From NCBI RefSeq assembly GCF_001194135.2, contig NC_068984.1, forward strand, positions 64,350,210 through 64,397,117: a stretch of 46,908 bases of DNA, written 5' to 3'. Source of the stretch: Octopus bimaculoides. Taxonomy: Eukaryota. The position numbers were made by a program, and so were the translations under genes. The notes beneath the pieces were generated by a model. It searched no databases. It was not told the DNA's origin and worked only from the letters and a program-made list of their open reading frames with translations. Numbering within the stretch: the stretch's first letter is position 1; each line of letters begins with the position of its first letter. Positions 6,451 to 46,533 of the stretch are shown here, piece after piece.

Positions 6451-6844
6451 TAAAGGATGTAAAGATATATACATATTTACATACAGACATTCACACACAT
6501 TTAAACACACATACATAACACACACCACTCGTATGAATTTAAGTATGTATGTATGTATGTATGTACGTATGTATGCATTTATGTAATGTACGTTAGTATG
6601 TATGTATGTGTGTATGTATGTATTTATGTATGTATGTATGTATGTATATGCATATATGTTCGTACACTCACAAGTAAGATATACATTTAAAACTTTTCAA
6701 AGGAATATAGCCTTTCTCCGGACAAGAAGACACTAATCAAACTTAATTTGCTTATATACTGTGTACATTCGCATTAATGTACACACAAATATATGCACAT
6801 ACTCACATAAATACACATATATACACATATACATATATATATAT

Positions 6845-6952
6845 GCATGCATGTATGTATGTATGTATGTATGTATGTATTCATTTATATTTACACACAC
6901 GCGACCCCACATACACAAACATATACACACGCACATATACATATACATACAA

Positions 6953-7020
<68 letters not shown>

Positions 7021-7128
7021 GCATGCATGTATGTATGTATGTATGTATGTATGTATTCATTTATATTTACACACACGCGACCCCACATACACAAACATAT
7101 ACACACGCACATATACATATACATACAA

Positions 7129-7196
<68 letters not shown>
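6845..7196. repeat. Tandem duplication, 2 x ~176 bp, of a compound microsatellite block
   Basis: gcatgcatgt at 6845 and 7021; gcgaccccacatacacaaac at 6901 and 7077; units nearly identical. Confidence 0.9.
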
Positions 7197-7521
7197 GAAT
7201 ATATACACATATACATTTATATATGCATGCATGTATGTATGTATGTATGTATGTATATTTACATTCCTCTCTTGCGTGTATATGCGTGTGTATATTTTTA
7301 GCTGTCACTACAAATGAACAGGCTTGTGTTATGTGCTTGATATAATGACAGTAGAGTGAAAACATGAGATCATCGTTGATATGAAGATCTATAAATGCTA
7401 TATACTTTTTACTTACATTTTTTATGCACGTATATATATTGACCTATATATATTTAAACAGATTGCCCCCCACACGCGCGCACACACACACATACACACA
7501 GACACGCACTCACATACATTT

Positions 7522-7571
<50 letters not shown>

Positions 7572-8528: not shown

Positions 8529-10199
8529 TAGATTTTCGCTTTTTCATCCAAAATAGAGACGAACACCATTCCTCTGATCGGCTTGAAAAACTGTTAGGAT
8601 ATTAAGATATTCTTCTTAACATAAAACTAATGGTAGCCTTAATTTTATCCACCAATGCGGTGTGGAGCACTCATTCTCATTTTTTGACATTTAAGTAGAT
8701 ATATACAAACATGAATAGACCATAGTTAAGCACCAGGTTTAGGTGATTATGTGAGTAAGGGATCCAACTTAGGTAATATATCACCAGGTGAATATAAGGA
8801 TTTACTTTTGGTAATGAGATAAAAAAAAACTCATAGGGTATTGGAATCTTAATAATGGATTTACAAATGCAATGACCAATTTACGGACTATTTGATTTTA
8901 CTCACAAGGTATTGGAATCTTATATGTATACCATTCTGCCTAGACAATGGATTTACAAATATAATATCCCTGCACTCAATCTCTATTTCCTATATTATCT
9001 AAATTAACTATTGCTTTACCATCCTCTCACAAGGTCTCCGATGAAGGGATATAATAAATAACCTGGAAACAGCTGTAAGATAAATATGTATGTATATATA
9101 TATANNNNNNNNNNNNNNNNNNNNNNNNNNNNNNNNNNNNNNNNNNNNNNNNNNNNNNNNNNNNNNNNNNNNNNNNNNNNNNNNNNNNNNNNNNNNNNNN
9201 NNNNNNNNNNNNNNNNNNNNNNNNNNNNNNNNNNNNNNNNNNNNNNNNNNNNNNNNNNNNNNNNNNNNNNNNNNNNNNNNNNNNNNNNNNNNNNNNNNNN
9301 NNNNNNNNNNNNNNNNNNNNNNNNNNNNNNNNNNNNNNNNNNNNNNNNNNNNNNNNNNNNNNNNNNNNNNNNNNNNNNNNNNNNNNNNNNNNNNNNNNNN
9401 NNNNNNNNNNNNNNNNNNNNNNNNNNNNNNNNNNNNNNNNNNNNNNNNNNNNNNNNNNNNNNNNNNNNNNNNNNNNNNNNNNNNNNNNNNNNNNNNNNNN
9501 NNNNNNNNNNNNNNNNNNNNNNNNNNNNNNNNNNNNNNNNNNNNNNNNNNNNNNNNNNNNNNNNNNNNNNNNNNNNNNNNNNNNNNNNNNNNNNNNNNNN
9601 NNNNNNNNNNNNNNNNNNNNNNNNNNNNNNNNNNNNNNNNNNNNNNNNNNNNNNNNNNNNNNNNNNNNNNNNNNNNNNNNNNNNNNNNNNNNNNNNNNNN
9701 NNNNNNNNNNNNNNNNNNNNNNNNNNNNNNNNNNNNNNNNNNNNNNNNNNNNNNNNNNNNNNNNNNNNNNNNNNNNNNNNNNNNNNNNNNNNNNNNNNNN
9801 NNNNNNNNNNNNNNNNNNNNNNNNNNNNNNNNNNNNNNNNNNNNNNNNNNNNNNNNNNNNNNNNNNACACACACACACACACACACACACATCTCCATAC
9901 ACACACACACACACGCACGTCCATTTCATATATCTTGCAATTTCTGCTCTCTGCAAATAAAATTTTTACAGATAAAACTGCTTACAAAAATTGCGATTAA
10001 TGTATAATTTCTTTTTATGTCCATAATTAAATAAATCTTTTAATGATTAGACACACATCCAATAGAATAGCTCTCGCAAACAGACTACGTACAAATTCTT
10101 TCTTCACAACTCCTGAAACCATTTTCTGACAGGAGTGGGTGAAATCTTCATACAGCTGGAGGCTCCAATCGAAACGCGACACGAAATGATCAGGTTGAG

Positions 10200-10369: not shown

Positions 10370-10404
<35 letters not shown>

Positions 10405-10443
10405 ATATATGTATGTATGTGTGCTTATATCTATGTGTATCTG

Positions 10444-10650
10444 TTTTTGTCTACCAATCATCGCTTGACAACCGATGCTGGTGTGTTCACAACCCTGTAA
10501 CTTAGTGATTCGGCAAAAGAGGCCGTTAGAATAAGTGCTAGGCTTACAAAGAATAAGCCCTGGGGTCGATTTGCTTTACTAAAGGCGGTGCTCCAGTATG
10601 GCCGCAGTCAAATGACTGAAACAAGTAAAAGAATAAAATAATAAAAGAAT
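10444..10650 (+). mobile_element. SINE family C, 3' module only
   Basis: cgcttgacaaccgatgctggtgtg...ggcggtgctccagtatggccgcagtcaaatgactgaaacaagtaaaagaat. Confidence 0.9.
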
Positions 10651-14061: not shown

Positions 14062-15553
14062 TTGGCCTTGATAAATGTGCAAAAGCTACCTTTATCAAAG
14101 GAAAAATGACAAAAACATCTAATGTGAACCTTGACCAGCAAAATGTCATAAAAGAGTTAGAACTAGCGGAGAGCTACAAATACCTAGGGGTAATTGAAGG
14201 GGACAATATCAAGCATTCAGTGATGAGGGAAGGGATCAGAAGAGAATGTTATCGCAGGGTGGGAGCAATACTGNNNNNNNNNNNNNNNNNNNNNNNNNNN
14301 NNNNNNNNNNNNNNNNNNNNNNNNNNNNNNNNNNNNNNNNNNNNNNNNNNNNNNNNNNNNNNNNNNNNNNNNNNNNNNNNNNNNNNNNNNNNNNNNNNNN
14401 NNNNNNNNNNNNNNNNNNNNNNNNNNNNNNNNNNNNNNNNNNNNNNNNNNNNNNNNNNNNNNNNNNNNNNNNNNNNNNNNNNNNNNNNNNNNNNNNNNNN
14501 NNNNNNNNNNNNNNNNNNNNNNNNNNNNNNNNNNNNNNNNNNNNNNNNNNNNNNNNNNNNNNNNNNNNNNNNNNNNNNNNNNNNNNNNNNNNNNNNNNNN
14601 NNNNNNNNNNNNNNNNNNNNNNNNNNNNNNNNNNNNNNNNNNNNNNNNNNNNNNNNNNNNNNNNNNNNNNNNNNNNNNNNNNNNNNNNNNNNNNNNNNNN
14701 NNNNNNNNNNNNNNNNNNNNNNNNNNNNNNNNNNNNNNNNNNNNNNNNNNNNNNNNNNNNNNNNNNNNNNNNNNNNNNNNNNNNNNNNNNNNNNNNNNNN
14801 NNNNNNNNNNNNNNNNNNNNNNNNNNNNNNNNNNNNNNNNNNNNNNNNNNNNNNNNNNNNNNNNNNNNNNNNNNNNNNNNNNNNNNNNNNNNNNNNNNNN
14901 NNNNNNNNNNNNNNNNNNNNNNNNNNNNNNNNNNNNNNNNNNNNNNNNNNNNNNNNNNNNNNNNNNNNNNNNNNNNNNNNNNNNNNNNNNNNNNNNNNNN
15001 NNNNNNNNNNNNNNNNNNNNNNNNNNNNNNNNNNNNNNNNNNNNNNNNNNNNNNNNNNNNNNNNNNNNNNNNNNNNNNNNNNNNNNNNNNNNNNNNNNNN
15101 NNNNNNNNNNNNNNNNNNNNNNNNNNNNNNNNNNNNNNNNNNNNNNNNNNNNNNNNNNNNNNNNNNNNNNNNNNNNNNNNNNNNNNTGAAGACGAAAACA
15201 ATACCTATTGTCATAGGTGCCCTGGGAATGACAGCGAAACGGGCTGATTACTACCTAGCTCAGATGCCAGGAAACCCCAAAATGGCTGAATTTCAAAAGA
15301 TAGTGCTCATGGGAACTGCCCATATCCTACGTAAAATACTGTCTATGTGATCTCAAATTTTAAAACAAACACATAATTTTCTTATGGTTTCTTAAACATT
15401 CACTAGAACAAAACTGTACAAATCCAAATATATGGTACCCTAGGCATAACACCTACATGAACTTCTAACTTGTTGTCTCTTGAGGTCTCTGGGTGAGACT
15501 TGAGACCAACTTGTACAAATGCAAAACAAAAGTCAAACATAAAATAATAATAA
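14062..15553 (+). mobile_element. 5'-truncated R4/Dong-clade non-LTR retrotransposon (RT end plus RLE C-terminus; middle in gap)
   Basis: FGLDKCAK...ESYKYLGVIE (RT end/thumb); after the gap IPIVIGALG...FQKIVLMGTAHILRKILSM* (stop 15348-15350), typical of R4/Dong C-termini; ~190-bp 3' UTR ending in aataataat; AAT repeats on both sides. Confidence 0.88.
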
Positions 15554-20291: not shown

Positions 20292-20775
20292 TCTTGAGTA
20301 ACATGAATGAAATAGAGAGATAGAGATAGTGTGTGTGTGAGTGTGTGCGAGATAAAGTAAGATATTTCAGCATTGAGAGACAGTAAAAGTAGATATTAAT
20401 ATAAATGTGTAAGACAAAGTGGGTGTGATATGGATAAATAGGAATATAGAGAGGCGATGATGATGGATATGAAGACGTAGCAAAGTTTATGGTGCAAGGT
20501 CTTTAGTTATCTAATTCTGTCTATTTTTATCTCTTCATACCTCTCACATCATCCGTCTCTCACCCCTCTCCTCACCACTCTCCCTCTCCTCACTTCTCTC
20601 CCCATCCTCACATCTCTCCCTCCCCTCTCCTCTCTCTCCCCCACTCTCTCTTTTTATCTCTACGATCGAAATGTTCTTTTAATTGTAAACCAGTAAAAAC
20701 AGAGAAAATGCAATGAGGTGTTTTGTTTTTTTTATGTGTATATGCATATACTCATGTATATGTGAGTGCATGCAC

Positions 20776-22100
20776 CACAGTAGGCTGAGGAAGAGATTTC
20801 GTGGAAATTTGGTAATAAATTGACGAAAAATTATCCCCTGATAGTGGTTGAGCTCTCGTTGAAGACATATTCATAAGGCAATTTGGAAAATTTATGAAAC
20901 TCAAACATTTCTCAAAAATCTGAGGGCCTAAGACCTAAATCTCATATTTGGGTACTTCTGTCCGGAAACATAAAATCTGGCATAATTTGAATTAAAACGA
21001 GGCTTGGAAAGTGAATGGGAGCACATTGGAAACATACGGGTGCAGCTGTTTTAGAAATTTATGAAAATTCCAAATTTACAAAACTCTCCGGATCTGGGGT
21101 TAAATTTCCATATTTGAGCATTTGGGGCTAAAATACAAAAACGGACATTGGTTGGGTGAACAAGATTAGAAAGTAGTTGAGACCTCTAAGGAAGCATATT
21201 GATTCCGTAATTCTGGAATAGGAATGATTTACTGTTACACATTATAGCATCATCTCGTCGAACAAGTAACCATCATATGTTACAGTAGGAGTAATCACAT
21301 TTTTTTTCTTACATTAACGAACTGAAAGTCCATATACATTCCTTGCAAAAAGGTTGCGCGTTCATTTTCTCAAGGACCGATGGATCAGAAACAATCCACA
21401 TCTTCCATAGAGTATCAATGCGGGCTGTCACCCGGGAAGTTTTCTGCGATAAATTGGTTTTTATTCTTTTAAAATTTATTGCAGCATTCTATTCCACTTT
21501 CATCCAAGTTCCCGAGTCCTTCATCATCGTTTAACTCAGTCAGTTCTCTGGAGTGACCTCGAATTTTATGTAACGTCGGATGATGCTTATCCAGCGTCAA
21601 GAAGGAAAATGTAAAGATTTATACGAAAGTTCTTGTTCGACTCTATATCAGCCTTCTTCTTGGGAGTACTTGAAAATATCATTGACAAAGTATGACGATA
21701 ATATGAGAACAATAAGAATTGAGAATAATTGCTCATATAGTATCAACTACTCTGATGTAATAATTTGCGTCCAGGTGAAATTTACCCCGAAATTTTCAAT
21801 GTTCATCATTATATCAGGTATTAAATTTAAAATTTTATTTTTAGATATTGGCCAATCAGATTTTTCGCGGGTTGAGCAGATTTTGGGGATCGAATCCTAA
21901 CACAGTGCGAGAAATAATTGCAAAAGCAGGTAATTTTAATATTTTTCCATGCTTATTTGGCTGTCACTACAAATAGATGTCAGGAGGCTATTTTCATTGA
22001 CTTCCATCACTTCAAACCCTTAGCGAGGTCGTGTAACAAGCTTTGTATGTTATTTTAAAATTTAGTGGGGAAAGCAGACAGACTTTGTAGTCCTGGTGAA
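20776..22100 (-). mobile_element. Decayed Transib/RAG1-like DNA transposon fragment (3' part of transposase plus one terminus)
   Basis: With two 1-nt frameshifts, minus strand 21593-21336 reads WISI-PTLHKIRGHSRELTELNDDEGLGNLDESGIECCNKF-KRIKTNLSQKTSRVTARIDTLWKMWIVSDPSVLEKMNAQPFCKEC, matching RAG1 HKTLAH..E..E..G..G...EG.ESGNK..R..RQS...DVL..HW and Transib SDP; terminus CACAGTA at 20776; extent beyond ~21870 is uncertain. Confidence 0.75.
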
Positions 22101-22200
22101 ACTGATTTTTCGTAAAGGCGGTGCACCAAATTGGCCGCTGTTTCAAAAACTGAAACAAAAGATAAAATATATTAAATTAAGAAAGATACGTTTCCCAATA

Positions 22201-22504
22201 TACTCTTTTACTTGTTTCAGCTATTTGACTGCGGCCATGCTGGAGCACCGCCTTTAGTCGAACAAATCGACCCGAGGACTTATTCTTTGTAAGTCTAGTA
22301 CTTATTCTATCGGTCTCTTTTGTCGAACTGCTAAGTTACGGGGACGTAAGCACACTAGCATCGGTTGTCAAGCGATGGTGGGGGACAAACACAGACACAC
22401 AAGCACACATACATATATACATATATACGACGGGCTTCTTTCAGTTTCCGTCTACCAAATTCACTCACAAGGCTTTGGTCGGCCCGAGGTTATAGTAGAA
22501 GACA
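22201..22504 (-). mobile_element. SINE family C (CORE-like), head truncated
   Basis: Same body as 25352-25764; ends at agaagaca before a gap; an extra 3'-module fragment lies at ~22110-22185. Confidence 0.9.
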
Positions 22505-23423
22505 TTTAGAAATACGACAAACTAAAATAGATACCACNNNNNNNNNNNNNNNNNNNNNNNNNNNNNNNNNNNNNNNNNNNNNNNNNNNNNNNNNNNNNNN
22601 NNNNNNNNNNNNNNNNNNNNNNNNNNNNNNNNNNNNNNNNNNNNNNNNNNNNNNNNNNNNNNNNNNNNNNNNNNNNNNNNNNNNNNNNNNNNNNNNNNNN
22701 NNNNNNNNNNNNNNNNNNNNNNNNNNNNNNNNNNNNNNNNNNNNNNNNNNNNNNNNNNNNNNNNNNNNNNNNNNNNNNNNNNNNNNNNNNNNNNNNNNNN
22801 NNNNNNNNNNNNNNNNNNNNNNNNNNNNNNNNNNNNNNNNNNNNNNNNNNNNNNNNNNNNNNNNNNNNNNNNNNNNNNNNNNNNNNNNNNNNNNNNNNNN
22901 NNNNNNNNNNNNNNNNNNNNNNNNNNNNNNNNNNNNNNNNNNNNNNNNNNNNNNNNNNNNNNNNNNNNNNNNNNNNNNNNNNNNNNNNNNNNNNNNNNNN
23001 NNNNNNNNNNNNNNNNNNNNNNNNNNNNNNNNNNNNNNNNNNNNNNNNNNNNNNNNNNNNNNNNNNNNNNNNNNNNNNNNNNNNNNNNNNNNNNNNNNNN
23101 NNNNNNNNNNNNNNNNNNNNNNNNNNNNNNNNNNNNNNNNNNNNNNNNNNNNNNNNNNNNNNNNNNNNNNNNNNNNNNNNNNNNNNNNNNNNNNNNNNNN
23201 NNNNNNNNNNNNNNNNNNNNNNNNNNNNNNNNNNNNNNNNNNNNNNNNNNNNNNNNNNNNNNNNNNNNNNNNNNNNNNNNNNNNNNNNNNNNNNNNNNNN
23301 NNNNNNNNNNNNNNNNNNNNNNNNNNNNNNNNNNNNNNNNNNNNNNNNNNNNNNNNNNNNNNNNNNNNNNATATATATGTATATTTGTATGTATATATAT
23401 GTATATATATATGTATATATTAT

Positions 23424-25351: not shown

Positions 25352-25764
25352 TACTCTTTTACTCTTTTATTCTTTGACTTGTTTCAGTCATTTGACTGCG
25401 GCCATGCTGGAGCACCGCCTTTAGTCGAATCAAATCGACCCCAGGACTTATTCTTTGTAAACCTAGTACTTATTCTATCGGTCTCTTTTTGCCGAACCGC
25501 TACGTTACGGGGACGTAAACACACCAGCATCGGTTGTCAAACGATGGTGGGAGGACAAACAGACACACAAACCCACATACACATATATATACATATATAC
25601 GACGGGCTTCTTTCAGTTTCCGTCTACCAATCCACTCACAAGGCTTTGGTCGGCCCGAGGCTATAGTAGAAGACACTTGCCCAAGGTGCCACGCAGTGGG
25701 ACTGAACCCGGAACCATGTGGCTGGTAGGCAAGCTACTTACCACACAGCCACTCCTGCGCCTAT
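25352..25764 (-). mobile_element. SINE family C, full length (tRNA head, CORE-like box, internal microsatellite, 3' module)
   Basis: Minus head ataggcgcaggagtggctgtgtggtaag...gggttcagtcccactgcgtggcaccttgggcaagtgtctt (resembles MIR/CORE accttgggcaag); tail aagtcaaagaataaaagagtaaaagagta; (TA)n on both sides. Confidence 0.92.
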
Positions 25765-26156
25765 ATATATATTTGAATAATATTTACTTTATACAAGAGA
25801 AATTGCCTAACGCATCTTTAAGGGTATCTTCATGTTCTGAAACTTATAATCAATGTACTATTCTTGCCAGTAACAACAGTAACAAAAATAACAATATGGT
25901 CCTTCTCATAACCTCAAAGACTGGTGAAGGAAAATAATTTTCGACCGGAGCTTTGTTCCTAATACTAGCGACATCGCTAAATACACCAAAGCGCCTATTA
26001 GTTGCATAATATGAGCAATGGATTGATTCTGCCCTCGAATAACACGAGTACTCCTACCATTTTGGTTTTACCCAGTTCCCGAAAAACGAAATCACCATCA
26101 AAGTATGAGATAATGGCAGGGGATGCGTAGATTCTGGAATTGATCTGATGTGTGTG

Positions 26157-33051: not shown

Positions 33052-33470
33052 ATACTCTTTACTCTCTTTTACTTGTTTCAGTCATTTGACTGCGGCCATG
33101 CTGGAGCACCGCATTTTAGACGACCAAATCGACCCCAGGACTTATTCTTTAGAAGCCTAGTACTTACTCTATCGGGCTCTTTTGCCGAACCGCTAAGTTA
33201 CGGGGACATAAACACACCAGCATCGGTTGTCAAGCGATGTTGGTGGGACAAACACAGACACACAAACACATACACACATACATATATTTATATACATATA
33301 TATACGACGAGCTTCTTTCAGTTTCCGTCAATCAAATCCACTCACAAGGCTTTGGTCAGCCCGAGGCTATAGTAGAAGACACTTGCCCAAGATGCCACGC
33401 AGTGGGACTGAACCCGGGACCGTGTGGTTGGTAAGCAAGCTACTTACCACACAGCCACTCCTACGTCTAT
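33052..33470 (-). mobile_element. SINE family C, full length
   Basis: Collinear with 25352-25764. Confidence 0.92.
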
Positions 33471-34016
33471 ATCAATTTCTGTTAATGAACTGAATGAGCA
33501 ATTCCGTTTCTTTAGAAAAAAAAATAACTTTTGTAATCTATTTAATTTCTTTTTCGACGGTCGAGTATTCAGATAAATTTTTATTCAATGAATTTCAATT
33601 CATTGTATTCGATATGCGAACTTTGTTGCGCAAAACACAATGCAATTAATAATGCTTGAGTCTTTTCCTCCTATGAGTTACAGCAGGCTAAACATGGATA
33701 GCATTTTAAAGTAGTATGTTACTTAGACCTAGTGCAAAAACTATAATAAACCGATAAACGTGTTATTGATATTCAACGTTTTCTAGTTAAAGTAAAGAAG
33801 CCTATATACTATTAAAACTCATACATCAGTGTTTATTTTCAATTAACACAGATATTGGCCAATAGATCGGTGATATATTGTGTATTGATAAAACAAAAAG
33901 AAATTGGTTTATCTATTTGTTTATATTCTTACAAATTTCTTTTCGTAACTTAATAAAAGATTACTACTACAACCACCACCACTACTACTACTACTACACA
34001 CACACATACACACACA

Positions 34017-34328: not shown

Positions 34329-34584
34329 CATACAATAATAATACTAAAGGAGTGATCTAAGTATTACAAATAGTATATATAAAGTGTGTTGGTCGATCAC
34401 GTCTTCACATTTCCCCAATGTCCTAGTGCAAGGATGCAGAGACCCAGAAGTTCAGGACCTACACTCTGTATGGGCGTGTGTGCTACAGAACCTCCCAAAG
34501 CTAGACCCCAATATCTAAACATTATCTTAGTACAATAAGATTATCCATGAAGAAAAACAACCAACAGTAATGCAAGTAATGTGT

Positions 34585-34816
34585 GCGTGTTTGTGTGTGG
34601 GTGTTTGTGTGTCTGTGTTTGTCCCCCTAGCATTGCTTGACAACTAATGTTGGTGTGTTTATGTCCCCGTAACTTAGCGGTTCGGCAAAAGAGAACGATA
34701 GAATAAGTACTAGGCTTACAAAGAATAAGTCCCGGGGTCGATTTGCTCGACTAAAGGCGGTGCTCCAGCATGGCCGCAGTCAAATGACTGAAACAAGTAA
34801 AAGAGTAAAAAGAGTA
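34585..34816 (+). mobile_element. SINE family C, 3' module, inverted relative to the 33052 copy
   Basis: gcttgacaac...ggcggtgctccagcatggccgcagtcaaatgactgaaacaagtaaaagagta. Confidence 0.92.
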
Positions 34817-34968
34817 ACACTATGAATCCACAAATACTCTCCACCTAACTAGAATGAATGACAGCTCTGAATAACAAGACATAACAATTCACAAACAAGC
34901 ATAACAATTGCGCATTCTCAGCGTCAGCTGCCAAATGGATATCACTATTGTTTCGTTTCGATATATAT

Positions 34969-36961: not shown

Positions 36962-38923
36962 CAGTGGTTATTAACCTTTCCACTATCACGCTCCCCCTAG
37001 GAATTTGTCCTTCTCTCCACGCCCCCTTGCATCTATGAATAAAATTTCCTCCCAGATCTTAAATAAAATCTAAAGTATGTTCTGTCTTTTTATTGAATAT
37101 GAATTAGTCACCTAATACAAACTATATATAATTTTATATATAATCACAATATACAAAAAGTGAGATATTTGACATTGCTTCTTGGCAAAAAAAGTTTTTT
37201 TTTATTGAATATGAATTAGTCACATACTTAGCTACAAAATCTTAAATGCGTGGTTGAATGCCAGAGAGCGCACAACGTAAGTCCCTTTCAGCGTTCAGCA
37301 TGTTTCTGTACTTTGTCTTGACAGCAAGGAACGCAGAAAATGCAGCTTCACAAAGATACGTGGATCCAAACAGCTAAAGTCCGAAGAGCCTGATGTGAGA
37401 TCAGAGGGTAAACAGGAAGGTACCTGATCCAGTTCTTTGAAGTCTTCTTTAGCTAGTGAGTTGAACTCCAGCTCAAGAAACTCCTTTTGTACTTCATCTA
37501 AAACATCAGTAACTTCACACTGAAAAAGGTTCCTAATGAATTCCCAAGCTTCACGCTTTTCATCTATATATGGGAAGTGTCTGATGAATTCTGTTTTCAA
37601 GTCAGTTAGATGAGTTATTATTTGTTTCTTTAATTCAGAATCAAGGTTACCGGGAATGAAAGCAGAATCCAAGTAATAAAACTGGCTGTATTTCCCTGCT
37701 GAATTCGACATTTCCAGTTTGGCCATGAAGGTTCGAATAGTGTCGTGCTTCTTTTGATGTTGATGTTTTTCCCTTGTAGTTTAAGGCCGAGAGAATTCAA
37801 CACTTCGAAGATGTCCACCAGGTAAGCTAGAGATAGCTGAAAGCCTTCTGACTGGAACTTGTCATGGAGATTTACTTTCTGCTGCAAATCTAGAAATATT
37901 GCTACTTTTTGTACTTCGTGAAGCCGTCCAAGCATATTCTGTTTTTAATAGCCATCGTACGTTCGTGTGAAAAAGCAATGCTTCATGCTCAGATTCCATA
38001 TTTTTACACAACAGTTTAAAAAGACGACTGTTTAAGGCTCCACCTTTAACAAAGTTGACAACCTTGATAGCCACGATCAGGACATTTCTCATCTCAGTAG
38101 GTAAGCTTCTGGACGTTAAGGCTTCATGATGAAGTATGCAGTGTCTAGCTAAAACAGATGGATTTTTGTTTCTTCCACCTTAGTAATGTATCTAGACTGC
38201 AGATCAAGCATGGATGGAGCTCCATCAGTGCACGCCACTACCAGTGAATTCCACAATAGGTGGTTTCCAGGAGAGAAGTTTGATACATCACGAAAAATAG
38301 CTGCAGCTGTTCTACAACTATCCATAGGGTGAAACAACACTTCTTCTTTACACAATTGCCTGACACAAAACGAGCATATACCAGAAGCTGAGAACACTGA
38401 ACGATGTCAGTCGTTTCGTCACACTGGCTGGTAAAAATAGGAGAATCTCTTACTTGAACGAGAATTTGATCTTTGATGTCTTCAGACAAGTCGTCGATTT
38501 TTCATTTGACTATATTGTTTGATAGTGAAATCTGGGAAAGCCTGTTTGCGCTATCTTTCCCCAGAACTATTTCTGCTTCACGGAATAAACTTGGTTTTAC
38601 GAGAGACTCTCCTATGTTATGGCTCTTCTTGCTCTTTGCATTCAAAATGGCAATATCATAGGAAGCCTCAACAACCATTGGAGTTTGTTGCCGAAATGCC
38701 CCATTACTTAGCTTGCTTCAAATAATGTTTTTCGTTTCAAAGAATGCCTTAGACTTGTCTGCGAGAGCAGGATATGTCGTCTTCAAGTGTCGTTCCAAAC
38801 GTGAGGGTTGCATTTCATCACTGCTCAAAGTTTTGTAACATGTCACACACTGGGGGACTTCTGTGTCACCCGTTTTGAGGGACACGAATCCAAATCGGAT
38901 ATATTCGTCAAGTTACTTCCGTT
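36962..38923 (-). mobile_element. Decayed hAT transposon (Buster/Charlie/ZBED5-like), 5' truncated, one TIR kept
   Basis: BED finger QCVTC..RH..H; QCDETTDIVQCSQLLVYARF; ACTDGAPSML; VVNFVKGGALNSRLFKLLC..HEALLFHTNVRWL; HLTDLKTEFIRHFP; TIR cagtggttattaacctttc at 36962 after ttctaaat. Confidence 0.93.
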
Positions 38924-41360: not shown

Positions 41361-41370
41361 TGAATATTTT

Positions 41371-41570
41371 CTTTTATTCTTTTACTTGTTTCAGTCATTT
41401 GACTGCAGCGATGCTGGAGCACCGACTTGAGGGGTTTTTGTCGAACAAATCGACCCCAGTACTTATTCTATCAGTCTCTTATGCTGAACTGCTACGGTTA
41501 CGGAGATGTAAACACACCAACACCGTCAAGCGGTGATGGGGAGACAAACACAGACAAAAAGACACACACA
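41371..41570 (-). mobile_element. SINE family C, 3' module
   Basis: tttacttgtttcagtcatttgactgcagcgatgctggagcacc...gtcaagcggtgatggggagacaaacacagac. Confidence 0.88.
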
Positions 41571-41729: not shown

Positions 41730-42543
41730 ATGAGTGCAAAGAAACGGAAGTAACTTGACGAATATATCCGATTTGGATTCGTATCCCTCCAAACGGGTGA
41801 CACAGAAGTCCCCTAGTGAGAGATATGTTGCAAGACTTTGACCAGTGATGAAACTTTGACCAGTGATGAAACTTTGACCAGTGATGAAACTTTGACCAGT
41901 GATGAAATGCAACCCTCATGTCTGGGACGACACTTGAAGACGACACATCCTGCTCTCGCAGACAAGCCCAAGGCATTCATTGAAACGAAAAACATTCTTT
42001 GAAGCAAGCTAAGTAGTAGGGCATTTCGGCAACAAACTTCAATGGTTGTTGAGGCTTCCTATGAGATTGCCATGTTGAATGCAAAGAGCAAGAGCCATAA
42101 CATAGGAGAGTCTCTCGTAAAATCAAGTTTACTCCGTGAAGCAGAACTAATTCTGGGGAAAGATAGCGCAAACAAGCTTTCCCATATTTCACCATCAAAC
42201 AATACAGTCAAATGAAATATCGACGACTTGTCTGAAGACATCAAAGATCAAATTCTCGATCAAGTAAGAGATTCTCCTGTTTTTACCATCCAGTGTAACG
42301 AAACGACTGACATCGTTCAGTGTTCTCAGCTTCTGATATATGCTTGTTTTGTGCCAGGCAATTGTGTAAAGAAGAAGTGTTGTTTCACCCTATGGATAGT
42401 TGTAGAACAGCAGCAGCTATTTTTCGTGATTTATCAAACTTATTTCAGGGAAACCAGCTTTCGTGGTAGTCGCTCCTAGGGATGTGCACTGATGGAGTTC
42501 CATCTATGCTTGGTCTGTAGTCTAGATTCATTACTAAGGTGGA
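41730..42543 (+). mobile_element. Second, inverted copy of the same hAT transposase (N-terminal part)
   Basis: atgagtgcaaagaaacggaag start; 41743-42543 aligns with the reverse complement of 38174-38923; SEDIKDQILDQVRDSPVFTIQCNETTDIVQCSQLL. Confidence 0.93.
41835..41906 (+). repeat. 18-bp tandem repeat x4 (actttgaccagtgatgaa) in the BED-finger coding region
   Basis: Four perfect units; a single unit in the other hAT copy. Confidence 0.97.
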
Positions 42544-45926: not shown

Positions 45927-46036
45927 NNNNNNNNNNNNNNNNNNNNNNNNNNNNNNNNNNNNNNNNNNNNNNNNNNNNNNNNNNNNNNNNNNNNNNNNNN
46001 NNNNNNNNNNNNNNNNNNNNNNNNNNNNNNNNNNNN

Positions 46037-46390
46037 TTACTCTTTTACTTGTTTCAGTCATTTAACTGCGGCCATGCTGGAGCACCGCCTTTAGTCGAGC
46101 AAATCGACCCCGGGACTTATTATTTGTAAACCTGGTACTTATTCTATCGATCTCTTAGGCCGAACCGCTATATGACGGAGACATAACCACACCAGCATTG
46201 GTTGTCAAGCAATGCTAGGGGGGGACAAACACGGACACACAAACACACACACACATATACATATATATACGACGGGCTTCTTTCAGTTTCCGTCTACCAG
46301 ATCCACTCACAAGGCTTTGGTCGGCCCGAGGCTATAGTAGAAGACACTTGCCCAAGATGCCACGCAGTGGGACTGAACCCGGAACCATGT
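46037..46390 (-). mobile_element. SINE family C, outer head missing at an AT microsatellite
   Basis: Collinear with the 25352 copy up to gaacccggaaccatgt. Confidence 0.92.
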
Positions 46391-46533
46391 TATATATATA
46401 CAATATATATATAATAAATATATATATACATATATATCATATATATATATATACATATATATCATATCATCATCATCATCTTCGTTTAACGTCCGCTTTC
46501 CATGCTACAATATATATATATTTATCTATAAAT

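Follow-up and report, generated by a model that had tools for sequence, protein, structure and literature searches.

A fossil in an Octopus bimaculoides contig, probably the 3′ portion of a Transib transposon with a decayed CCGHC tail

It is accepted that the V(D)J recombinase descends from Transib and RAG-like (RAGL) transposons, and the distribution of these elements and the architecture of their ends therefore bear on the origin of the 12/23 arrangement of recombination signal sequences (RSSs). Transibs form two subgroups, of which Subgroup I is the closer to the RAG1-like (RAG1L) proteins; its members include MleTransib of the ctenophore Mnemiopsis and Transib-9_HM of Hydra, and its features are a CTT1 tail, an alpha11-alpha12 region that is lacking in Subgroup II (e.g., HzTransib), and asymmetric terminal inverted repeats (TIRs) (Tao et al. 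2022, Natl Sci Rev; PMC9435367). The CCGHC motif is described as the hallmark of the CTT* tail of invertebrate RAG1L (PMC7204232), and work on Transib elements explicitly describes a CCGHC tail there too (bioRxiv 10.1101/2023.08.20.553239). Across 39 mollusc and annelid genomes, two cephalopods among them, a survey yielded one Transib bearing an open reading frame (ORF) in total (PMC10294476), and in the literature we found no published account of Transibs or RAGL elements from cephalopods. Here, we describe a locus within 46,908 nucleotides of Octopus bimaculoides DNA (contig NC_068984.1, positions 64,350,210 to 64,397,117; hereafter the window), in which positions 20776 to ∼21793 are very probably what is left, at the 3′ end, of a Transib DNA transposon that died long ago; its gene lies on the minus strand, and the lineage fits Subgroup I.

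The window is rich in repeats, with 18 to 40% G+C, nine runs of N (assembly gaps), and abundant microsatellites. On the minus strand, the fossil is flanked by a microsatellite tract (below position 20776) and by a short interspersed element (SINE)-like copy (22190 to 22537), which adjoins the region just upstream of the fossil and is directly followed by an 833-N gap (22538 to 23370). It begins with its 3′ terminal repeat at 20776 and extends to ∼21690, or perhaps as far as 21793; an earlier note on this DNA, which proposed a RAG1/Transib-type transposase fossil from its motifs, gave an extent of 21311 to 21900, which is too small, as the 3′ terminal repeat starts at 20776. The transposase remnant comprises the last 155 to 185 residues (minus strand, 21793 to 21242) and resolves after frame correction into five colinear pieces, giving four frameshifts. 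There is one in-frame TAA (21316 to 21314) in the well-supported part, and the upstream part, where support is weak, has two more stops. The DNA-binding domains, both catalytic aspartates, the ZnC2 cysteines, and the 5′ TIR are missing from the assembled copy, which is either 5′-truncated, or has its 5′ part inside the gap, or has decayed past recognition. Its features are as follows.

20776 to 20812, plus strand (read inward): 3′ TIR, CACAGTAGGCTGAGGAAGAGATTTCGTGGAAATTTGG
20813 to 21241, minus strand: noncoding 3′ subterminal stretch from the stop of the transposase to the terminal repeat
21242 to 21334, minus strand: C-terminal tail in frame 1, YGLSVR, stop, CKKKNVITPTVTYDGYLFDEMML, stop, with the second half of the decayed CCGHC knuckle
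21336 to 21470, minus strand: C-terminal domain and first two knuckle cysteines in frame 0, KRIKTNLSQKTSRVTARIDTLWKMWIVSDPSVLEKMNAQPFCKEC
21475 to 21576, minus strand: ZnH2 histidine pair and third catalytic glutamate in frame 2, TLHKIRGHSRELTELNDDEGLGNLDESGIECCNK
21579 to 21596, minus strand: short piece RWISII in frame 0, from frameshift-aware alignments, matching the family's PWISITP just before the histidine pair
21590 to 21793, minus strand: segment in frame 1, ISG, stop, ISPGRKLLHQSS, stop, YY...LSMIFSSTPKKKADIESNKNFRINLYIFLLDAG

An exhaustive phmmer search of 1.84 billion representative proteins returned 86 matches, the best of which (E = 1.6e-14) is 50% identical over 83 residues. With the corrected fossil peptide, HzTransib is the only significant phmmer match in the PDB (E = 4.4e-4), and Smith-Waterman comparisons of the peptide give z scores of 14.0 for HzTransib, 9.4 for BbRAG1L, and 6.2 for zebrafish RAG1, each above all 200 shuffles. 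When the relatives are placed onto the window by tblastn and frameshift-aware alignment, they are colinear from ∼21740-21830 down to 21248, with tblastn matches at 21709 to 21599, 21473 to 21336, and 21337 to 21257; frameshift-aware alignments to relatives P0003 and P0021 cover the tail segment (21242 to 21334). A first family hidden Markov model matched two core blocks only, and a profile of 29 full-length relatives (A2, 713 positions) matches the window in four colinear pieces, at profile positions 557 to 588 (−0.8 bits), 598 to 635 (45.2 bits), 636 to 681 (23.3 bits), and 684 to 709.

The upstream limit of the remnant is less sharp. The stretch from 21688 to 21590 is weakly backed by the A2 profile, similarity upstream of ∼21690 is not significant with it, and the part further upstream, which contains the string GRKLL and two stops, is just colinear and plausibly spaced. 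For this far-upstream part, frameshift-aware alignment gave frame 0 with P0003; frame 1, which includes GRKLL, is the more plausible of the two, and neither is proven. Neither tblastn nor the profile finds a transposase match upstream of ∼21793.

A quite different account of the locus, that its motifs are due to chance or belong to another DDE superfamily or to an exon of a host gene, was left room by the first-pass searches, which came back empty: with the peptide as originally read, Pfam and a word-indexed protein database gave nothing, the PDB gave nothing relevant or significant (only tryptophanase, E = 0.76), and Pfam still gave nothing with the frame-corrected peptide. Against an E value of 1.6e-14 among 1.84 billion proteins, four colinear profile pieces, and a matching terminal repeat at 20776, we give this account virtually no chance, and a working exon is excluded by the frameshifts and stop codons. 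Among solved structures, the top match is HzTransib. The motifs are confirmed as real and lie far beyond chance.

All of the strings quoted in the earlier note are found on the minus strand, including the block DTLWKMWIVSDP. The proposed H-x4-H pair is present in LHKIRGHS (histidine codons 21570 to 21568 and 21555 to 21553), and the catalytic glutamate in GIECCNK has its GAA codon at exactly 21489 to 21487; these are the equivalents of RAG1 H937/H942 and E962, and align with the invariant family columns H620, H625, and E647. The segment that holds them (21475 to 21576) also aligns with HzTransib, BbRAG1L, and RAG1, and the segment that follows (21336 to 21470) aligns with HzTransib ...RKKSRQASNEDILNMLIISSDP. 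Directly after CNK the first reading went astray by overlooking a frameshift (∼21475/21470), and the true continuation is KRIKTNLSQKTSRVTARIDTLW..., not ...KNKNQFIAENFPGDSP. The GRKLL string that had been taken as an upstream echo of RAG1 is indeed present in frame 1 within 21793 to 21590, where it is colinear with the TGNxARxLL of the family and at the right spacing, although it is without statistical support from the profile.

The end of the peptide likewise reads as first described, with CKEC, a frameshift, and YGLSVR-stop-C. The CKEC cysteine codons are at 21347 to 21345 and 21338 to 21336, and the codons of the continuation are Gly at 21331 to 21329, Leu (replacing His) at 21328 to 21326, TAA at 21316 to 21314, and Cys at 21313 to 21311; four nucleotides, not nine, separate the second cysteine from the glycine of the zinc knuckle. 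That this copy is dead is borne out by the four frameshifts and the in-frame stop or stops. Equivalents of RAG1 D600 and D708, which were to be located, are both absent from this copy, as they fall in its missing 5′ part, and the copy is inert, with only one of its three catalytic residues left and no open frame. The window copy is a neutral molecular fossil without functional consequence.

The identity of the family is evident from its longer members. Long relatives (550 to 790 residues) match Pfam RAG1 (PF12940) above the cutoff, with up to 58 bits, and most carry a precomputed PF26100 RAG1_RNase_H assignment. Searched against solved structures, relative P0021 matches HzTransib at 1.5e-24, amphioxus RAG1L at 3e-14, and vertebrate RAG1 at 5e-5; for the A2 profile the corresponding values are 8.7e-60 for HzTransib (6pqn; 206 bits), 2.4e-43 for BbRAG1L (152 bits), and ∼1e-30 to 1e-33 for RAG1 structures (∼110 to 120 bits for vertebrate RAG1). 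Invariant among 29 intact relatives are D273 (in GFDGSG), D376, and E647, together with C391 and C394 (ZnC2) and H620 and H625 (ZnH2). Residues C696, C699, G703, H704, and C709, which constitute C-x2-C-x3-GH-x4-C, are at least 90% conserved. The Pfam RAG1, profile, and PDB matches together bear out the proposal of a RAG1/Transib-type transposase fossil with a decayed CCHC (CCGHC) tail. A neighbor-joining tree over 119 shared columns places the fossil on a long branch within the family, beside P0001 and P0003, with HzTransib, BbRAG1L, and RAG1 falling outside it.

Four relatives are complete, with TIRs at both ends, and are listed here by their positions in their own contigs.

L003, 6896 to 11187: TIRs CACAGTGGG(C/T) at both ends
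L004, 7212 to 10795: TIRs CACAGTGGG(C/T) at both ends
L007, ctenophore Bolinopsis microptera, GCA_026151205.1, 2879 to 6805: TIRs CACAGTGGG(C/T) at both ends
L008, 3308 to 6448: TIRs CACAGTGGG(C/T) at both ends

The termini CACAGTGGGC are common to these complete relatives, and three of the four are flanked by perfect duplications of the target site (TSDs), each 5 bp long, namely TCATC, AGATA, and TTGGT. The ends of each element are asymmetric: the offset of the second conserved TIR block differs between the two ends by 10 nucleotides in L003 and 9 nucleotides in L004 (computed), and by ∼10 nucleotides in L007 and L008 (read by eye). We note that L003 and L004 have the long spacer at their 3′ end, and L007 and L008 have it at their 5′ end; an asymmetry of ∼10 bp is kept, and the way it is oriented relative to the gene is not. 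In L003 there is also a 19-nucleotide inverted repeat (7510 to 7528 and 10143 to 10161, 95% complementary) that brackets the transposase ORF, with its right arm 13 bp past the stop codon. This inner repeat was considered as the TIR and dropped, the true CACAGTGGG ends lying at 6896 and 11187.

The fossil retains one such terminus. Its 3′ TIR begins CACAGTAGGCTG at 20776 on the plus strand, one mismatch from the family terminus CACAGTGGGCTG, and with both strands searched this is the sole match to CACAGTGGGCTG in the window at one mismatch or fewer. Both orientation and place are as expected for the end downstream of a minus-strand gene, and by our own estimate chance would yield only ∼0.002 such matches over 1.1 kb in this orientation. 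The fossil heptamer CACAGTA differs from the family consensus CACAGTG by one mismatch, and the inner blocks GATTTCG (offset 20) and GAAATTT (offset 29) stand as in the 3′ TIRs of L003 and L004, respectively. Because similarity to the 3′ TIRs of the relatives goes on inward, the fossil retains a genuine RSS-like terminal repeat of the long-spacer type, matching that at the 3′ end of L004.

A 5′ TIR was not found anywhere in the window, with or without a TGCAC duplication. One candidate, CACTGTG on the minus strand at 21907 to 21901, would make the copy an internally deleted nonautonomous derivative of ∼1.13 kb. The sequence CACTGTGTTAGG... at 21907 resembles the L003 5′ TIR CACAGTGGGTTAGAGG, and protein similarity fades ∼100 bp downstream of it, as would be predicted if the 5′ end had been brought up against the last third of the gene by an internal deletion. 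Nonetheless, we regard such a derivative as improbable: a heptamer at one mismatch or fewer is expected by chance about once per 400 bp per strand (our own calculation), there is no TSD (the flanks are TGCAC at 20771 to 20775 and CGAGA at 21908 to 21912), alignment with the family TIRs requires a 2-nucleotide gap and is poor past 12 nucleotides, and the second conserved block is absent in the right orientation. The CACTGTG was therefore rejected as a 5′ TIR, being not significant.

The element anatomy also bears on whether the fossil could be the relic of a RAG1L-RAG2L transposon of the kind known from bivalves and nemerteans, and not a Transib. Such an origin would accord with the CCGHC tail, which is typical of invertebrate RAG1L (PMC7204232), with the occurrence of RAGL elements in molluscs, and with the strong match of the family profile to the whole length of BbRAG1L (2.4e-43). 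However, the stop codon (21242) is just 466 bp from the end of the element (20776), too little to accommodate a RAG2-like gene. Inside the TIRs of L003 and L004 there is in each case a single long ORF (∼700 residues) and no second one, with 690 to 1060 bp from the stop codon to the 3′ end, and the termini are common to all four complete relatives. A kelch-type RAG2L, which the earlier note had suggested seeking near fuller copies, is not in evidence, the neighboring genes of the relatives having no kelch Pfam record. The relatives (600 to 790 residues, with the first catalytic aspartate at about residue 273) give no RING or ZDD Pfam matches, HzTransib scores best at every level tested, and CCGHC tails are published for Transib as well. 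A RAG1L-RAG2L relic is thus very unlikely; lacking a RAG2L gene and an N-terminal RING region, the element is a Transib and not a RAGL.

Two proposals of the earlier note need qualification in this light. The tail motif had been presented as one described for invertebrate RAG1-like proteins and absent from vertebrate RAG1; it is typical of invertebrate RAG1L, but since CCGHC tails are published for Transib too, it is not specific to RAG1L. The suggestion of a lineage intermediate between Transib and RAG1L fits our observations, although such a lineage is already described as Subgroup I Transib (PMC9435367), with which it can be equated because the family shows the CCGHC tail, ∼50 extra positions, and asymmetric TIRs. 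The extra positions (A2 399 to 449) are skipped by HzTransib and aligned by BbRAG1L, which would be consistent with the alpha11-alpha12 region; the fossil itself lacks this part.

Several observations weigh against a Subgroup I Transib at this locus, and temper our confidence in it. The fossil peptide itself has no direct match in Pfam or in the word-indexed protein search. Only one end is present in the window (flank TGCAC), so that neither a TSD nor a 5′ TIR can be shown for this copy, and among the complete relatives L004 is without a matching TSD. The closest relatives reach an identity of only ∼50% and derive from marine metagenome contigs (ENA/Logan), with no consensus from the same species, and the neighbor-joining tree, with its 119 columns, carries no support values. 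The putative assignment to Subgroup I rests on published feature definitions and not on a joint phylogeny with the sequences of Tao et al. Even so, a dead Subgroup I-like Transib remains in our view the very probable identity of the fossil.

By analogy with HzTransib and RAG, the intact ancestor would have encoded a single transposase of the DDE/RNase-H fold that bound both ends, cleaved them by nicking followed by hairpin formation at the CAC border, and reinserted the element with a 5-bp target duplication. As has been published for the RAG1L of amphioxus, the CCGHC tail would probably have clamped the TIR DNA immediately internal to the heptamer.

The remainder of the window contains other repeats and coding remnants. 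The SINE-like repeat (∼350 to 400 bp) is present in at least six copies, 61 to 92% identical to one another and with a conserved head ...TTTTACTTGTTTCAGTCATTTGACTGCGGCCATGCTGGAGCACCGCC....

22190 to 22537, 25363 to 25775, 33057 to 33481, and 46033 to 46446: SINE-like copies, direct
10396 to 10650 and 34579 to 34818: SINE-like copies, inverted
41370 to 41431: fragment of the SINE-like repeat

A 143-residue ORF on the minus strand (37295 to 37726) resembles the C-terminal part of hAT-derived ZBED5/FAM200/SCAND3-like proteins. Most of its named homologs belong to Octopus sinensis, O. vulgaris, and O. bimaculoides (68 to 88% identity), and others, about as similar, to lobster and crabs (Homarus, Petrolisthes, and Scylla; 70 to 77% identity); this hAT family might have spread horizontally between cephalopods and decapods. 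Taken by themselves, these homologs back the octopus origin of the window only in part. Beside this ORF is an inverted repeat pair (38174 to 38845 and 41875 to 42543), whose arms of ∼670 bp, in two blocks, are 91 to 92% complementary and ∼3 kb apart, and which may represent either a foldback structure or a large element with TIRs. On the plus strand, an ORF at 14106 to 15350 is split by a 913-N gap, and its ends, …YKYLGVIEGDNIKH… and …IPIVIGALGMTAKR…, resemble the C-terminal part of a reverse transcriptase from a non-LTR (long terminal repeat) retrotransposon. A 176-bp unit rich in CA/TA/TG microsatellite is repeated in tandem at 6781 to 6956 and 6957 to 7132, with 91% identity.

With the fossil, the known hosts of the Transib branch nearest to RAG1L come to include a probable cephalopod. 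No Octopus-named proteins are among the matches to the family, which fits the family surviving in Octopus only as fossils, although the evidence for this is weak. More tentatively, and with considerable doubt on our part, the fragment could be the first evidence that RAG-proximal Subgroup I Transibs once colonized cephalopods and, together with its many marine metagenome relatives, a marker of a large, mostly uncharted, and possibly still active marine clade. If so, such a clade could serve to test how an end asymmetry of the 12/23 kind operated prior to the acquisition of RAG2. The intact relatives, including that of Bolinopsis, are candidates for biochemistry, with their exact CACAGTG termini, 5-bp duplications, and asymmetry of 9 to 10 bp. 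In other respects the fossil is ordinary, and its lineage is already described.

Compared with the described Subgroup I Transibs, the family is likewise single gene, with a transposase of ∼700 residues, a RAG1-core-like DDE domain, and a CTT1 tail of the form C-x2-C-x3-GH-x4-C; its extra positions are consistent with a region corresponding to alpha11-alpha12, its asymmetric TIRs start with CAC, and it too has a ctenophore member (Bolinopsis L007). The window copy differs in being a truncated, frameshifted fossil with one end, in a cephalopod host. HzTransib of Helicoverpa zea (PDB 6pqn, Subgroup II), which is the best solved-structure match for both the fossil and the family, shares the H-x4-H, E-x2-NK, and SDP blocks, but has a CTT2-type tail in place of the CCGHC tail (PMC9435367) and lacks the ∼50 residues at family positions 399 to 449.

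The invertebrate RAG1L proteins (BbRAG1L, PDB 6b40; mollusc and nemertean RAGL-B, PMC7204232) have in common with the family the CCGHC tail, ZnC2 and ZnH2, the DDE triad, CAC-initiated TIRs, and 5-bp TSDs, whereas RAGL elements have a convergent RAG2L gene and an N-terminal RING/ZDD, neither of which is found in the present family. Vertebrate RAG1 is more distant: the fossil keeps the equivalents of H937/H942 and E962 at low identity (z = 6.2), and the family has no RAG2 partner and no acidic tail. As for the RSSs of V(D)J recombination, no nonamer-like ACAAAAACC block was seen; the terminal heptamer of the family, CACAGTG, is that of the RSS consensus, and the two ends differ in their spacers by about one helical turn, reminiscent of 12/23.

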